A program made the translations under genes and the position numbers. Below are positions 41,886 to 49,428 of a stretch of DNA of 64,000 nt, piece by piece; the first letter of the stretch is position 1; each line of letters opens with the position of its first letter. The notes under the pieces are model-generated. The model was not told the origin of the DNA. It made no database searches and worked only from the letters and a program-made list of their open reading frames with translations. The DNA lies in sequence record NC_031043.1; one strand, written 5' to 3'.

Positions 41886-43319
41886 ATGAACTTCATCATG
41901 GACTGGTATAGCCTCCTTACCTCATCATTAAAAGAATACCCAGCTTTACTGACCGCGTTCCTCACTGTAATGTCCGGTGGGTTGATGGCGGCAGTTGGTT
42001 TCGCTCTGGTCAGACTCCCGCGGGGGTTCGCTGATTTCTTCCGACGACAATGTATCACCACTCTGGTGTTCAACACCGCCTCCTCTGGCTGGTCTGATTA
42101 TAACCAGATGCAATACGTTGCCTTTATTAAGTGGTTCTCGAAAAACCGTTGGTTCGGTTGGTCGCGTACTATTACGTTTGATTCTGACGGCCGTAATGAC
42201 GGGGCTGGTGTGGGTCCGGGCATTGGGCGTCATTTCTTCTGGCATGGCTACCGCTTATTCATCTTCACGATTAGTGAGATGGACTCACAAGGTACTAACT
42301 CACAGAAGTATAAAGTGACCTTGTCCTGCGTAGGCCGCTCGAAGAAACCGATTTACGATGTGATGGAACAGTTCATGGTCAAACCCGACCGTGCTAACCG
42401 CATCGGCGTGTACCGTAACGGCACGGACGGCTGGAACTGGGTAACCTATGCAAACAAACGTTCACTCAGCTCGGTAATAATGTCGCCAGAGTTAGAAGAA
42501 GAGTTAGTCGGCAGTATGACAAACTTCCTGAATAACGAAGCGTGGTATCGTGAACGTGGCCTGAATTATAAGCTCACCTATTTACTGTACGGCCCTCCGG
42601 GGACGGGTAAGAGCACATTAGGTCGCGCACTGGCTTCGCACTTCAACCGCGACCTTTACATCCTGAGCCTGTCTGAATCTTCCGACATCTTTACTCTGCT
42701 GCAGAATGCTAAGGGTGGGATGGTGTTGATTGAAGATATCGATGGGTTCAGTGCGGCACGCAAGCGCACAAACAAAAAGAATCAGGTCGAATCACTCAAC
42801 ACCATTAAGTCTTCTGACCAGCCTATGAAGTTCGACGCGAAAGGAGAGCAGATAGCAGAGTCTGTATCGCCTTCTAAGAACCTCGAAGACATCATGGCTG
42901 AATGGGGCGGGATGACAACTTCATCGCTTCTCAATGCGTTAGACGGCGTTGTAGGGCTAGATGACGTTATCATTCTCCTGTCCACTAACCATCCTGAGAA
43001 ACTCGACGAAGCGTTAGTGCGTGATGGACGTGTTGACATCCGTGCAGAAGTCGGTTATCTGAATGACGCGGAGATTCGTCGTTACGTGAATATGTTCTTC
43101 CCGGATTATGTCGTCCCAGAAAGTATTCAGTTCTCATCGATGCCGGGTTGTACGGTGCAGAAACATTTCATGAACAACAAATACGATCCGGTTGCGTTTG
43201 TTGCTGATTTGGTAGAAGCGTCTGTTGGGGGTAATGTCGTCACTTCCCGACCACGTCCTGAAATGGCTTTTGTTGACTCGAAGTATCTGGTTGGCGAATC
43301 AATGAAGGAGGCGGGATAA
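41886..43319 (+). CDS. BCS1-like membrane AAA+ ATPase
   Basis: N-terminal TM, BCS1_N-like region, WYRERG..YK..YLLYGPPGTGKS, IEDID, LLNALDG and TNHPEKLDEALVRDGRVD. Confidence 0.85.
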   Translation: MNFIMDWYSLLTSSLKEYPALLTAFLTVMSGGLMAAVGFALVRLPRGFADFFRRQCITTLVFNTASSGWSDYNQMQYVAFIKWFSKNRWFGWSRTITFDSDGRNDGAGVGPGIGRHFFWHGYRLFIFTISEMDSQGTNSQKYKVTLSCVGRSKKPIYDVMEQFMVKPDRANRIGVYRNGTDGWNWVTYANKRSLSSVIMSPELEEELVGSMTNFLNNEAWYRERGLNYKLTYLLYGPPGTGKSTLGRALASHFNRDLYILSLSESSDIFTLLQNAKGGMVLIEDIDGFSAARKRTNKKNQVESLNTIKSSDQPMKFDAKGEQIAESVSPSKNLEDIMAEWGGMTTSSLLNALDGVVGLDDVIILLSTNHPEKLDEALVRDGRVDIRAEVGYLNDAEIRRYVNMFFPDYVVPESIQFSSMPGCTVQKHFMNNKYDPVAFVADLVEASVGGNVVTSRPRPEMAFVDSKYLVGESMKEAG

Positions 43320-44486: not shown

Positions 44487-44548
44487 GCAGTAAACAGGTG
44501 GTCCTCGGGGCTGCCTGTTCTTTATTATTTTTTCGTGGAGTATTCAGA

Positions 44549-45052
44549 ATGACAACCGTGTTTGTTTGTAAGGACTTCATAGTCGCTGACCGTGTGTTAA
44601 CCCGGGGCGATGAAACCATCCATGCTGACTTTAAGAAACTGCACGTCAACAGTGAGAAGACCATTGCGATTGCGGTGGTGGGTAATGTGAACTTTCGCGA
44701 CCACCACAAAATGGTGGCTAAGCATTTCTTCGGTGTTATCAAGAAACGTTATACCAGCATACCGGCACCTGTCCTGACAAAGTCGGAGGCTGCGTTAATT
44801 GGGGATTTGCAATTATACGTGTTGACCGCAAAAGACGTGTTCGTGATTACCAAAGCAGAGAACGTCCAGTGGGTAGCGGACGGATTAACCGAAGGGGCAG
44901 GGACAGGCTACGCATTAGCGTGTGCGGCTTTCTCGCTGGGTGCTAAACCAGAACACATTGTTCCTCTTGTTTCCAAGATAGACCCGATGTCCTCGACTGC
45001 GTTTAACATCGCATATCGCGTCGACCTCAAACCGATCACCTTAAAGGCGTAA
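44549..45052 (+). CDS. HslV/proteasome-beta-like Ntn-hydrolase peptidase
   Basis: SD ggag; starts MTT (catalytic Thr after Met removal), then IVADR, KKL, GAGTGYAL and VSKIDPMSS. Confidence 0.7.
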   Translation: MTTVFVCKDFIVADRVLTRGDETIHADFKKLHVNSEKTIAIAVVGNVNFRDHHKMVAKHFFGVIKKRYTSIPAPVLTKSEAALIGDLQLYVLTAKDVFVITKAENVQWVADGLTEGAGTGYALACAAFSLGAKPEHIVPLVSKIDPMSSTAFNIAYRVDLKPITLKA

Positions 45053-45054
45053 TC

Positions 45055-45603
45055 ATGGATATTGCTGCGATTATTACCCAGAAAGAGTTGTTCATCCGTA
45101 ACGTTGCGTGGGCTGCAGGATTACCGCAACCCATTAACTTGGACATTTGCTATACACCATTCGGGTTTGTTTTTCCGACGAACAATTACCAGCCTGTACT
45201 TGACGCAATAAATACAAAACAGGCCGATGCTATGCCGACGGGAGCTATACGTTGGGCAGTCTTAGGACATGACAACGTACTACGTTATGGCCGTATAAAT
45301 AATGAGTGGTGGACACTTAACATCGTGCCTGACACCCAACGCTTCTATTGCTTAGCAGATGAGGCGGAGACACATTACCTGACGTCTATGATTCATTTGA
45401 TGTCCAGTGGGTTAATCGAACCTGAAATGGCTTTAACCGATACTGCCCCGCAGCTGATACGTAGACTGAAGAAACATTGGCCGATGGTTGGTGACTTCCT
45501 GAAATTTAAACGGTCAGATGTTCTGGCCGAGTTACACAAACGATTCCCTAACCCTGAAGAAATTTATTTCCATTCCCAATTTACGAGTGTATTAAAAGAT
45601 TAA
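45055..45603 (+). CDS. Hypothetical protein
   Basis: Operon coupling. Confidence 0.75.
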   Translation: MDIAAIITQKELFIRNVAWAAGLPQPINLDICYTPFGFVFPTNNYQPVLDAINTKQADAMPTGAIRWAVLGHDNVLRYGRINNEWWTLNIVPDTQRFYCLADEAETHYLTSMIHLMSSGLIEPEMALTDTAPQLIRRLKKHWPMVGDFLKFKRSDVLAELHKRFPNPEEIYFHSQFTSVLKD

Positions 45604-45604
45604 C

Positions 45605-46342
45605 ATGGCTAAATCTAAATCCCCCCGCAAAAAGAAACCTGCTAAACCTAACCATGGCGCGCGTCACATTGTACTGGCAATTAAAGCAGCGTATAACAAG
45701 CTGTTCTTCTTAGGCTCCTCGAACCTGCCTATTACCGCTATGCGCACTAACACGCTGCGCGCTCATTTAAAACCTGCTGATGTGGAGATAGCCATCCCGA
45801 CGTTACTGGACGAGCTGCGTTTCTTCCCGCGCGACTGGCATATCTGGGTTGGCGCCTTCTGTGAAAATGGTGAAGAGCGTTGGGTGGAAACTTCCATCAG
45901 TAAGATGCCTCAGTTCGTGGTCAGTGACTTCTCTGATAACGCGGAGTCTATCGTTCGTGGGGTAATGGAAACAGAGAACCTCGAACACATGGTCGGGTAT
46001 GCGTACATGGTCGCCCCTAACGACTATTACAACATGGAAGTCATGAATGATGAGCTGTGCGACAAGTGGGTTGATGCGAATATCTACGATAAGTCCACAC
46101 ATCTCTCAGCAGACCTCCTCAAACTGCGTGAGAACGACTTAGCAGCCGCGTTCATGGGTTTGCCGGGTTATGTCGCGCAATCGCGTGAGAAGATTGTACA
46201 GAAGACTATTGAGAACCTCGAAAAGAAAGGTATCAAAGTTGATAAAGCGTATGTCGACTCCAAGTTCAATCAACAAGATATCGTGGACGCCCTCGTATCG
46301 GCAGGACGTCAATTCAATCCGTTTGAAGGAGAAACGTTATAA
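45605..46342 (+). CDS. Hypothetical protein with basic N-terminal arm
   Basis: MAKSKSPRKKKP; coupled to neighbours. Confidence 0.8.
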   Translation: MAKSKSPRKKKPAKPNHGARHIVLAIKAAYNKLFFLGSSNLPITAMRTNTLRAHLKPADVEIAIPTLLDELRFFPRDWHIWVGAFCENGEERWVETSISKMPQFVVSDFSDNAESIVRGVMETENLEHMVGYAYMVAPNDYYNMEVMNDELCDKWVDANIYDKSTHLSADLLKLRENDLAAAFMGLPGYVAQSREKIVQKTIENLEKKGIKVDKAYVDSKFNQQDIVDALVSAGRQFNPFEGETL

Positions 46343-46590
46343 TGGAAAACGAACAGCCTGTCTTCCCGGTGTACAATGAACCCTCCAATCCAGAATTTGC
46401 TATTGCGCACCAGCGAATGTACAACCTGGCTCGTGAGAAACAAGTCAGCTATGAGTTACACTACTCGGAAGTGGAGGACTCTTGGTACGTTGTGGTCAGT
46501 AGCTGCGCCCAATCTGAAAACCTTATCACCAAGACACGTTCTTTATCCCTTGTGATGGACGTCGCCATTAAGCATCTCGAAGCACTTTAA
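46342..46590 (+). CDS. Small hypothetical protein
   Basis: SD aaggag; TAATG coupling. Confidence 0.75.
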   Translation: MENEQPVFPVYNEPSNPEFAIAHQRMYNLAREKQVSYELHYSEVEDSWYVVVSSCAQSENLITKTRSLSLVMDVAIKHLEAL

Positions 46591-46604
46591 AAAATTACAT
46601 TTAG

Positions 46605-46640
46605 ACCCCTTACTTTGTGTAAGGGGTTATTACTTTTTTT
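46605..46640 (+). terminator. Intrinsic terminator
   Basis: accccttac/gtaaggggt stem followed by a T-run. Confidence 0.7.
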
Positions 46641-46671
46641 GCACGCAAAAAACATACCTGTTGAGGATACA

Positions 46672-46989
46672 ATGAAAAGAAAAATATTGGTGCTGGCATT
46701 AGTAATGATGTCCGCCGGGTGTGACGCTTCAGAAACCAACTTGTACTACGACCAGCAGCTCCGACGGGAAATCTTCAAAGAGTGTCTGGCATCCATTCCA
46801 AAAGGGCCTGAGAAAATCGATAACTCTAACGACTGGCAGGAAGTGGTTGAAGAGTGCGGCGAACAGGCCAGGAAGATGTCGGCGTTCTATGTGAAGATTC
46901 CTTCCTCTGGTGGTGAAGGTTATTATTTCAATAACAGCATCAAAGGCGGCGAAATGAAAGAACGTACTCCTCAGAAGGTGCAGAAATGA
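46672..46989 (+). CDS. Lipoprotein 1
   Basis: SD gagga; signal peptide MKRKILVLALVMM with lipobox SAGC; Asp at +2. Confidence 0.8.
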   Translation: MKRKILVLALVMMSAGCDASETNLYYDQQLRREIFKECLASIPKGPEKIDNSNDWQEVVEECGEQARKMSAFYVKIPSSGGEGYYFNNSIKGGEMKERTPQKVQK

Positions 46990-47243
46990 AAACACTCATT
47001 TTAGCACTAACTACTACCGCACTACTGGCGGGTTGTGATACGGGACCGGCCCAGAAGGCCGTCTATCGCACAGACGAGGCCAAAGAAGAGCGGTTGTACA
47101 TGGCGTGTCTCGACGCTGTGAAGGTTAAAGTTAAAGCAGGCGAAGATAATCTCGAGGACGCGATTACCTCTTGCCGTACTAACGCGTCGGCGCTGTCATC
47201 CAAAATGGTTTATGTCAATGCGAATCCTAAAAAGCCTCAGTAA
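46986..47243 (+). CDS. Lipoprotein 2 (paralogue of lipoprotein 1)
   Basis: MKTLILALTTTAL with lipobox LAGC; Asp at +2; same two-Cys pattern. Confidence 0.85.
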   Translation: MKTLILALTTTALLAGCDTGPAQKAVYRTDEAKEERLYMACLDAVKVKVKAGEDNLEDAITSCRTNASALSSKMVYVNANPKKPQ

Positions 47244-47331
47244 TCTCGCCGGTTACGGTATTAGCACGATAGCGGCAGGGACCCTTGCATTCTTTGCCGT
47301 TTATTACTTAGCGTTCTACGTCATTATTTAA
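47218..47331 (+). CDS. 37-aa single-TM peptide (not in ORF track)
   Basis: MRILKSLSNLAGYGISTIAAGTLAFFAVYYLAFYVII; fills the gap before the HslU-like gene. Confidence 0.45.
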   Translation: MRILKSLSNLAGYGISTIAAGTLAFFAVYYLAFYVII

Positions 47332-47379
47332 CCCGTCACCCGACTACCCTTGCGTGGTTGGGTACAATGAGGAATAAGC

Positions 47380-49428
47380 ATGAAAGGTTCTAAAGGTATT
47401 CGCACTCCGGTAGAAATGGTTGAAATCTTCGATAAGTCAGTCCGTGGTCAGCATGACGCTAAGCGTATGCTTGCCGTTGCGATTGCAAACCGTCACCGTC
47501 GTACCAAACTCTCAGCAGAAGACCGCAAGTTCATCAAGAAACAAAACATCTTGATTGAAGGCCCTACCGGTTCAGGTAAGACTGCGCTGATGCGTGTACT
47601 GCGTGAAGACTTTGGCTTGCCGGTATTGGAAGTGGATATCACAGAGTACAGTGAAACCGGTTATCACGGTAAGTCCGTCGCGGATATGATTGGTCAGCTC
47701 TCGCAGCTCGACTTTACGGTGCCGAAGTGGTTTAAGGAAAAGCCCGAAGTTAAGGAAGTGAAGAAGGCCGAAGATGTTAAGCTTACTGCGAACAGCTCCT
47801 TCGATAGTGGGACTAAAGACAAAGACACCGCCCGCAAGCATCTCATCGTCTCCCGTATCCTACTGATTGGGTTAATCGCCGGACGTGTATACAGTAATCA
47901 TGCGCTCTCTGATGCTGGTGTGGGCTCTATGATTCACAAGACGGTGGAAGATTACGGCTCAGAAAACCCCGCTGAACTGATTAACTTCTTCCAGCGTGGT
48001 TGTGATTTGGTAGATAACCACGAAATCCCTATTCTTGCCGACTCCACAGCGTTCATTGAAGCGGCCGCCCGGGCTATCATACCGTTTGAAGAGTCAGGCG
48101 ATAAAGACCGCGTACCGACCCCTGAGTTCTTCGCACGTTATAAACTCGAAGGGTCGACTGTTAATGGGCTGCTCGGCGGTTTGATGGCATTAGACGTAGC
48201 CGACATTAACGCCCTGTGGGATGTCAAAACGCCAGTTGAAGAAATTGAAGCTTGGCCGAAGGTAGCACTTGCCGGTGAAAAGAACGGGTTCTATCGTGAA
48301 CGCTTGAAAGCCGCCATGACAACGTACTTCTTCCGTTCGTTGATTGCAGGCATGCTTCGTAACGACGTGGCAAAAGTTACCGACCACGCTTCACGTACCA
48401 TGGCGATGCAGAAGTACAACGGCAAAGACATGACCAAAGAAGTAACGACAATTTTATCTTCCGATAATCAAGAAGAGAAAGACAAGTTACTTAAGTACGT
48501 CAAAGATGGGATGCCGGTATTGTGTGCCAGCTCAATGGTTTCCTTGAGCCGTGGATTCCGTTCGTGGACTAATGCGCTACCTAAGCTGAAACTGACTACC
48601 AAGTCAGAACTGTTATTCCCGCCTAAGGTGACAGCGGCATGGGATGAGCTAATCGACATGACCTTTGAAACGTTTTGGGACTTAACCACCAAAGATTTTC
48701 AAAGTAAGACGGTGAAACAAGTCCGTGACGATGTCAACAATGGGGGCTTGCTGTTCGCTCCGAGCGGGGATACTGGTTTGGATAACGACATGCCGTGGAA
48801 TCGTCGACCACCAATGGGTGGTATTCCGGGTCTGGGTATGATGTTCAACATGGGCGGCGGCGCTAACGTTACTGGAGATTCCAAAGAGTTCCTCGAGAAC
48901 TTTGCGGTCGTCTTCATTGATGAAATCGATAAACTGATTCAGGCATCTGACCGTTCTGATGACGTTTCACGTATTGGCGTACAACGCGGTCTACTGAAGC
49001 TGGTAGAGGGCGGCGTCTATAGTGGTATCGACACTAGCAACATTCTGTTCGTGGGCGCAGGAGCCTTCTCAGGCACCACACCGTCGAAGCTGTTACCTGA
49101 GCTGGTTGGCCGCTTCCCAATTCGTGCCCGTCTGAAGGCATTAACGCACGATGACTACAAAGCCATCTGTCAGTTAAGTAAATCAGCGTTCAACATGTAT
49201 CTGAAGATGCTCGAAACGGATGGCGTTAAAGTTATCCATGATGACGACACCTTTGGTTACATTGCGCAGATTACTGAACTGGAAAACCAGGAATTCAATC
49301 TGGGTGCTCGTCGCATTGAAGCGATTATCGAGCGTGTTTTTGAACCGGCCATGTTTGAGCCGGAGAAGTTCTTAGAACACGGGTTTGATATCCGTGGTGA
49401 AACACTACGTAAATCATTAAGAGGTTAA
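47380..49428 (+). CDS. hslU: HslU (ClpY)-like AAA+ unfoldase with enlarged I-domain
   Basis: GQHDAKRMLAVAIANRHRR, GPTGSGKT, GYHG, VFIDEIDK, SRIGVQRGLLKLVEG, PELVGRFPIR and LGARRI. Confidence 0.85.
   Translation: MKGSKGIRTPVEMVEIFDKSVRGQHDAKRMLAVAIANRHRRTKLSAEDRKFIKKQNILIEGPTGSGKTALMRVLREDFGLPVLEVDITEYSETGYHGKSVADMIGQLSQLDFTVPKWFKEKPEVKEVKKAEDVKLTANSSFDSGTKDKDTARKHLIVSRILLIGLIAGRVYSNHALSDAGVGSMIHKTVEDYGSENPAELINFFQRGCDLVDNHEIPILADSTAFIEAAARAIIPFEESGDKDRVPTPEFFARYKLEGSTVNGLLGGLMALDVADINALWDVKTPVEEIEAWPKVALAGEKNGFYRERLKAAMTTYFFRSLIAGMLRNDVAKVTDHASRTMAMQKYNGKDMTKEVTTILSSDNQEEKDKLLKYVKDGMPVLCASSMVSLSRGFRSWTNALPKLKLTTKSELLFPPKVTAAWDELIDMTFETFWDLTTKDFQSKTVKQVRDDVNNGGLLFAPSGDTGLDNDMPWNRRPPMGGIPGLGMMFNMGGGANVTGDSKEFLENFAVVFIDEIDKLIQASDRSDDVSRIGVQRGLLKLVEGGVYSGIDTSNILFVGAGAFSGTTPSKLLPELVGRFPIRARLKALTHDDYKAICQLSKSAFNMYLKMLETDGVKVIHDDDTFGYIAQITELENQEFNLGARRIEAIIERVFEPAMFEPEKFLEHGFDIRGETLRKSLRG

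Follow-up and report, generated by a model that had tools for sequence, protein, structure and literature searches.

Proteasome-like ATP-dependent proteolysis has its simple textbook model in HslUV, and two genes of Erwinia phage vB_EamM_Phobos raise the question of whether a phage-encoded peptidase and ATPase of this descent still act as one machine. Phobos is a 229.5-kb jumbo phage of the genus Derbicusvirus that infects Erwinia amylovora. The window analyzed here is a 64,000-nucleotide stretch of its genome (sequence record NC_031043.1), and positions are given in window coordinates, which equal the record coordinates minus 62000. Within the window, gp123 (44549-45052, plus strand) encodes a 167-amino-acid HslV-like N-terminal-threonine (Ntn) peptidase, and gp130 (47380-49428, plus strand) encodes a 682-amino-acid ATPase of the HslU clade. 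Both belong to a long co-directional run of plus-strand genes, and no broken genes were seen between gp123 and gp130. The original prediction for this locus was an HslUV-like protease with rewired substrate recognition, with the fallback that the ATPase might work without its HslV-like partner. The answer we prefer, with no better than even confidence, is that the pair derives from hslVU and is now uncoupled: gp130 would be an autonomous unfoldase or remodeller with a clade-specific helical I-domain, gp123 together with its neighbor gp124 would be a separate peptidase cassette, and cooperation between the two would be optional and would not involve tail insertion.

The sequence of gp130 confirms it as an HslU-clade AAA+ ATPase that is closer to HslU than to ClpX and has intact ATPase motifs, as had been proposed for the protein starting at 47380. 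The protein matches solved HslU chains in two blocks (residues 5-120 and 500-664; E 1.3e-50), while its second-best match in the Protein Data Bank (PDB) is ClpX (E 1e-24). It also matches PHROG 4339, the family shared by true HslU, with an E-value of 1e-178. For comparison with HslU we used the Salmonella protein (locus L007) and the solved chains from E. coli, H. influenzae and S. aureus. The Walker A motif, GPTGSGKT, occupies residues 61-68 (47560-47583, plus strand), and Walker B, VVFIDEIDK, residues 510-518 (48907-48933, plus strand). Downstream of Walker B, the sequence GVQR..L..VEG, the sensor-1 region, PEL.GRFPIR (a conserved arginine-rich stretch common to gp130 and bacterial HslU) and GARR in the sensor-2 region all align with Salmonella HslU. 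The pore-1 loop at residues 94-97 (47659-47670, plus strand) is GYHG, as originally read; the aromatic tyrosine is kept, and histidine replaces the valine of GYVG. The corresponding loop in other phage clades is GYQG, GYVG, GYIG, GYKG or GYYG. The protein resembles ClpX in being a predicted AAA+ unfoldase of the same clade. However, it does not have the zinc-binding N-domain of ClpX, and it carries a large insertion at the exact site of the HslU I-domain, which ClpX lacks.

HslU activates HslV by means of its C-terminal tail, which enters between the peptidase subunits, and this mode of coupling is regarded as universal. The terminal tail (...DLSRFIL in the Salmonella protein) is absent from gp130, whose C-terminus, ...GETLRKSLRG, aligns to a point approximately 13 residues short of the Salmonella C-terminus. 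The earlier observation that a protein ending in ETLRKSLRG lacks the canonical activating tail is thus correct. The alignment also shows that gp130 does not contain the insertion of approximately 35 residues that carries the IGF loop in ClpX relatives. Because the tail and the IGF loop are both absent, gp130 has neither of the known peptidase-docking elements of this unfoldase clade, and it most likely works on its own. ClpX is able to act as a remodeller without its peptidase. None of the phage HslU-like clades has the tail in the representatives sampled, which stop at or close to a conserved G[YF]DI.G..LR segment or bear unrelated extensions; the only exception is P0031, which has an I-domain of bacterial size (138-142 amino acids) and ends like bacterial HslU. 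Against the TIGR00390 hslU model gp130 scores 210.7 bits (E 3.8e-62), below the trusted (equivalog) cutoff of 362.45. Judged from its sequence, gp130 therefore departs from HslU in two defining respects, the activating tail and the equivalog score.

The assignment of gp123 as a remote but real HslV-family peptidase is well supported by sequence, with respect to both homology and catalytic competence. The open reading frame (ORF) starts with an ATG at 44549 that is preceded by a GGAG Shine-Dalgarno sequence 9 nt upstream, and the protein begins Met-Thr-Thr; an alternative GTG start at 44498 falls within a hairpin. Removal of the N-terminal methionine would expose the Thr2 nucleophile, and there would be no propeptide. 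The protein matches PHROG 1040, annotated as the HslV peptidase family, with an E-value of 1.4e-21, and in a control search the genuine Salmonella HslV matched the same profile positions at a similar level (E 9e-23). Single-sequence searches of Pfam, NCBIfam and the PDB with gp123 returned no matches, nor did any proteasome or HslV model match in individual Pfam and NCBIfam scans of gp123 and 28 relatives. In the alignment of the 28 relatives (A2), Met1, Asp14 and Gly118-x-Gly120 (Gly118-Thr119-Gly120 in Phobos) are invariant, and Thr2 and Lys30 nearly so. When the A2 profile was searched against the PDB, the 13 best matches were all solved HslV chains (best E 3.2e-5), and the alignment pairs MTT with MTT, Asp with Asp, Lys with Lys and G-T-G-G with G-S-G-G. 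The positions of Asp14, Lys30 and Gly118-x-Gly120 correspond with matching spacing to residues of E. coli and Salmonella HslV. A comparison with Salmonella HslV using hhalign gave a probability of 78.5% (E 1.7e-5) over 128 columns at approximately 21% identity, and the two proteins are similar in length (167 and 176 amino acids). The original reading of the MTT protein as an Ntn peptidase is upheld by these profile matches and catalytic columns. The phage protein differs from bacterial HslV in that the best-conserved part of its family is a C-terminal motif without counterpart in the aligned part of HslV. The family is tiny. A profile search of 1.84 billion representatives returned 25 proteins, with 23 true clusters. 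Two candidate multi-domain HslV-like proteins, P0072 and P0088, were spurious and are TPR/Sel1 and PD40/RTX repeat proteins.

The peptidase and the ATPase are not inherited as the two halves of HslUV would be, since each is found without the other in related phages. A tblastn search of the phage collection identified close HslU-like genes in 27 distinct phages, including Derbicusvirus, Machinavirus, Wellingtonvirus and several Salmonella jumbo phages. The HslV-like gene is present in 13 of these (5 Derbicusvirus and 8 Machina-type), and the remaining 14 carry the HslU-like gene without it. In Caitlin and Kwan there is no HslV-like gene within 7 kb of the HslU-like gene and none was identified by tblastn of the whole collection; its position is taken by genes of other PHROGs. 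No HslV-like gene is found near the HslU-like gene in phage RAY or in the P0025-type and P0030-type contigs, and RAY was also negative in the whole-collection search. The HslU-like proteins of Machina, which has the HslV-like gene, and Caitlin, which does not, are 75% identical in the core and share the same C-terminal end point, with no difference in core conservation.

The converse arrangement occurs in three IMG/VR jumbo-phage contigs (L015-L017), which were recovered in a locus search with a 10-sequence subset of the HslV-like family alignment. These contigs keep a syntenic block of gp121-like, HslV-like, gp124-like, gp125-like and gp132-like genes. Only about 800 nt lie between the gp125-like and gp132-like genes, which leaves no room for an HslU-like gene, and none is present within 10 kb on the side covered, the rest of these genomes not having been searched. 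An IMG/VR scan with the HslU-like alignment returned mostly ClpX-like genes among the best 80 of 349 loci and is uninformative as to HslU-like genes elsewhere in phages of this type. The order and orientation of the two genes, peptidase then ATPase, match those of the hslVU locus in Salmonella. The sequences indicate that the HslV-like gene has a common origin with the HslU-like gene and is often inherited with it, and that either can be dispensed with while the other is retained.

The HslV-like gene has a constant partner in gp124 (45055-45603, plus strand), which encodes a 182-amino-acid protein of PHROG 8172 with no assigned function. A gp124-like homologue is the next ORF after the HslV-like gene in every lineage examined, including those without a syntenic HslU-like gene (L002:4636-5184, L003:5187-5753, L006:4549-5097, L008:7773-8321, L011:1078-1623, L012:8543-9085 and L015-L017:10486-11007). 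The homologues, which were joined into a family transitively via BLASTP, are 173-188 amino acids long and start between -4 and +5 nt from the HslV-like stop codon, and gp124 is probably translationally coupled to gp123. Phages without an HslV-like gene also lack a gp124-like gene. Given this strict pairing, which has no parallel in bacterial HslV, the conserved unit is the HslV-like gene together with the gp124-like gene. The gp124 protein matches no PDB sequence and shows no similarity to the HslV-like family, and its sole Pfam signal is a weak one to SUKH-4 (E 0.024). We considered whether gp124 might be an inactive HslV paralogue, but this was ruled out by an hhalign probability of 0.2% and the lack of a PDB match.

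At the I-domain site gp130 carries an insertion (residues 110-497; 47707-48870, plus strand). Approximately 412 amino acids separate the pore loop from Walker B, in agreement with the roughly 400 first estimated. In a MAFFT alignment with Salmonella HslU, a 138-amino-acid Salmonella segment and 392 amino acids of gp130 occupy the same columns (388 residues by the boundaries given above). A structure prediction and Foldseek search of the insertion had been proposed as a check on the original prediction. We modeled residues 110-497 with AlphaFold2 (AF2) on an alignment of nine full-length relatives that share the insertion (A5). The model has a mean predicted local distance difference test score (pLDDT) of 75.5 and contains 18 helices, with an all-alpha core from approximately residue 148 to 459. 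This core is flanked by low-confidence linkers, one rich in lysine and glutamate (110-147) and one rich in glycine, methionine and proline (460-497) that leads back to the ATPase core. Foldseek searches with the model identified no structural match in the PDB (best E 1.6, TM approximately 0.1) or BFVD (best E 0.74), and the HslU I-domain was likewise not matched.

Sequence comparisons also confine this domain to a narrow group. A region-restricted homologue search with the I-domain returned only three proteins, all close relatives, and the insertion is homologous only within P0001-P0010, which comprise Derbicusvirus-type and P0007-P0010-type proteins. Three other clades carry insertions of 230-450 amino acids, and neither jackhmmer nor hhalign detected homology among the four clade-specific insertions (probability 11% or less). 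The I-domain evolves much faster than the ATPase core. Phobos and phage CR5 are 51% identical in the I-domain and 80-85% in the AAA+ core, Machina and Caitlin are 44% and 75% identical, respectively, and between genera the values are approximately 20% and 52-58%. Either diversifying selection or weak constraint would fit these rates, which are as expected for a specificity module. On this basis the rewired substrate recognition of the original prediction is a reasonable inference from sequence, and the insertion most likely selects substrates or adaptors. The sequences give no support to any particular substrate, such as the host defense or division proteins first suggested. One short motif stands apart from this divergence. 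A Pro-x-Trp sequence at the start of the I-domain (within VPKWF in Phobos; gp130 residues 115-117, 47722-47730) occurs unchanged in each of the 13 phage HslU-like proteins aligned, whereas the rest of the phage insertion is non-homologous between clades. Salmonella HslU does not have the motif.

The original prediction placed both genes in the same early-promoter-driven region, and this could not be confirmed. A scan for sigma-70 promoters found 6 sites compared with 13.3 in shuffled sequence, rarer than chance, and two candidate upstream motifs (CTGTATGA and GKTACAATGA) were not enriched above chance. As these phages use their own RNA polymerases, the sigma-70 scan has little bearing either way. 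Two stable terminator-like hairpins with T-runs, both on the plus strand, bracket gp123-gp126. The first lies immediately 5' of gp123 (44493-44519; 12-bp stem, -17 kcal/mol, z -4.3). The second lies 3' of gp126 (46604-46628; 10-bp stem, -16.8 kcal/mol, z -5.4) and splits gp123-gp126 from gp127-gp133. The hairpins would thus separate the two genes into different units, with gp130 in the next predicted transcription unit after gp123-gp126. At the corresponding sites of CR5 no such hairpins were detected, which makes this a weak point.

Taken together with the V-then-U order and orientation, these features suggest that both genes may have come from a captured bacterial hslV-hslU operon and later become separable modules. 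In this scheme gp130 would be an active hexameric AAA+ unfoldase in which a lineage-specific, fast-evolving all-alpha domain, approximately 310 residues long and held by flexible linkers, has taken the place of the bacterial I-domain and would pick substrates or adaptors. Having lost the tail that docks on and activates HslV, and with no ClpX-type IGF loop, gp130 would work alone as an unfoldase or remodeller. Its PHROG 4339 relative in phage RAY (discussed below) suggests by analogy a possible site of action inside the phage nucleus. The gp123 protein would be a catalytically competent threonine peptidase of the HslV type, inherited and probably translated with gp124, its constant partner in place of gp130. 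If gp130 and gp123 cooperate in Phobos, they would do so optionally and could not rely on the canonical tail insertion. Of the two possibilities in the original prediction, the fallback is therefore the better supported, as the docking elements are absent, 14 of 27 phages have the ATPase gene alone, the L015-L017 contigs keep the peptidase without a syntenic ATPase, and gp124 is the partner that does not vary.

Several observations count against separate function. Every one of the 13 phages in the collection with an HslV-like gene carries an HslU-like gene approximately 2-2.5 kb downstream, such that the co-occurrence across related phages expected of a working pair holds from the side of the peptidase, and fails for the 14 HslU-like phages without an HslV-like gene and at the syntenic site in L015-L017. 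A P0009-type phage, at approximately 35% identity, keeps the whole block of a BCS1-like AAA ATPase, the HslV-like protein, proteins of 182 and 284 amino acids, and the HslU-like protein. Bacterial HslV is almost inactive without HslU, and an active HslV-like peptidase is therefore expected to need an activator. The 10-kb reach of the search in L015-L017 and the failure to detect the hairpins in CR5 also temper the case for separation, and an AF2 model of gp123, built on a shallow alignment of 8 sequences, was unusable (pLDDT 35). The principal competitor, which we consider possible at well short of even confidence, builds on the same facts: gp130 and gp123 would still form a two-component ATP-dependent protease in which gp130 unfolds the substrates that its I-domain selects and passes them to a ring of gp123, with docking at a novel interface that gp124 might bridge. 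Common origin, retained gene order, synteny that holds at such low identity and the dependence of HslV on an activator all agree with such a protease, as does the conservation of both the catalytic residues of gp123 and the ATPase motifs of gp130, and the conserved C-terminal motif of the HslV-like family could be the new docking surface. However, gp130 has neither tail nor IGF loop, an HslU-like gene with the same core and C-terminus is kept in phages that have no HslV-like gene, and the HslV-like cassette is kept where the syntenic site has no HslU-like gene. In Phobos the two genes are also separated by six ORFs and by the two terminator-like hairpins that bracket gp123-gp126.

Host proteins could supply the missing partner on either side. 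The gp123 protein, with gp124, might serve as an alternative peptidase ring, or a decoy, that uses or sequesters host HslU, leaving gp130 as a separate system. The persistence of the cassette in L015-L017 is consistent with this, HslV-type peptidases need an HslU-type activator, and an enterobacterial host would supply an HslU with an intact tail, as seen in Salmonella. However, gp123 and Salmonella HslV share only about 21% identity across the 128 aligned columns, and we consider the proposal improbable. The reciprocal idea, that gp130 delivers substrates to a host peptidase such as HslV or ClpP, would account for the wide occurrence of the HslU-like gene in phages with no HslV-like gene of their own, but the sequence lacks both the element by which HslU engages HslV and the IGF loop of ClpX, and we regard it as very improbable indeed. 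A bolder form of the uncoupled reading is that one captured hslVU operon has given rise to two new machines, a tail-less unfoldase with a hypervariable, structurally novel I-domain that acts at or in the phage nucleus, and an HslV-derived threonine peptidase in which an obligate gp124-like partner replaces the AAA+ activator. We think this version unlikely, if still worth stating. Were it true, the unfoldase would, for example, strip or destroy host or defense proteins or remodel phage replication complexes, and the gp124-like protein would activate or regulate a ring of the HslV type without an ATPase.

Two related systems allow a closer comparison. The pair in pEa_SNUABM_43 and other Machina-type phages resembles that of Phobos in containing both families in the same order with approximately 2 kb between them, occupied by gp124-like and PHROG 6965 genes, and in pEa_SNUABM_43 it is already annotated as a putative HslV-like / HslU-like ATP-dependent protease. 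It differs from the Phobos pair in its 290-amino-acid, non-homologous I-domain and its GYVG pore loop, and BLAST aligns only the C-terminal 44 residues of the HslV-like proteins. The second system is gp116 of Erwinia phage RAY, described as an HslUV-like protease that sits in the phage nucleus and is an accessory rather than a core gene (Prichard et al. 2023, PMC10299810). The supplement of the same study counts Phobos, CR5 and Derbicus as chimallin-encoding, nucleus-forming phages. Like gp130, RAY gp116 belongs to PHROG 4339, comes from a nucleus-forming jumbo phage of the same host, has an enlarged I-domain insertion and does not have the canonical tail. Unlike gp130, it has the pore loop GYYG, and the two proteins are 28-36% identical in their AAA+ parts with no homology between the I-domains. 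RAY also differs from Phobos in that neither an HslV-like nor a gp124-like gene is found nearby or by tblastn, and nuclear localization has been shown for RAY gp116 only.

Both Phobos genes are already labeled HslV-like and HslU-like in RefSeq and GenBank, and the RAY study mentions the family (PMC10299810). In the literature searched we found no analysis of the missing tail, the exchanged I-domain, the separate occurrence of the two genes or the cassette formed with gp124; one further article (PMC12345140) concerns transcription of host hslUV only and is not relevant. The family is of interest as it keeps the catalytic and ATPase residues while dropping the coupling element, swapping the substrate-recognition domain by clade and splitting the gene pair. 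It makes approachable how AAA+ unfoldases gain new specificity and whether a partner outside the AAA+ class can run an HslV-type ring. Given that its relative RAY gp116 is already placed in the phage nucleus, it also makes approachable the proteostasis machinery that nucleus-forming phages bring with them.

The remaining genes between gp124 and gp130 are all on the plus strand. The syntenic gene gp125 (45605-46342; 245 amino acids, PHROG 6965) sits between the HslV-like and HslU-like genes, and a gp125-like gene is present in Machina, Caitlin, Kwan, P0009-type contigs and L015-L017. It is followed by four small ORFs, gp126-gp129 (46342-47331), assigned to PHROG 31164, PHROG 10627 (twice) and an annotated ORF of 37 amino acids. 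The adjacent genes gp127 and gp128 (46690-47243; 99 and 85 amino acids) both belong to PHROG 10627 and represent a tandem duplication. The gp126 protein (46342-46590; 82 amino acids, PHROG 31164) matches the C-terminal part of a 230-258-amino-acid protein of PHROG 24315 (L003:8725-9417 and L004:8682-9458). The latter is encoded just 3' of the HslU-like gene in Machina and Caitlin and has weak similarity to a head maturation protease. The match indicates gene fission or rearrangement around the module.

Additional genes of note occur near the HslU-like genes of more distant relatives. A metagenomic 225-kb phage contig that encodes the HslU-like protein P0030 contains GroES (Cpn10) and GroEL (Cpn60) homologues approximately 5 kb upstream of the HslU-like gene (L099:2699-4700), and some relatives therefore have a fuller chaperone set. 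In a P0025-type contig (L100:11966-15952), the HslU-like gene is followed by a homologue of topoisomerase IV / gyrase A that is split by an intein, which bears a LAGLIDADG endonuclease domain according to Pfam. In Phobos itself a second AAA+ ATPase, gp119 (41886-43319), lies 1.2 kb upstream of gp123 and consists of a BCS1 N-terminal domain (PF08740, E 6e-12) and an AAA domain. BCS1-type ATPases translocate folded proteins, which is of interest for a nucleus-forming phage. The counterpart of gp119 in the P0009-type phage occupies the equivalent position and is 56-57% identical.

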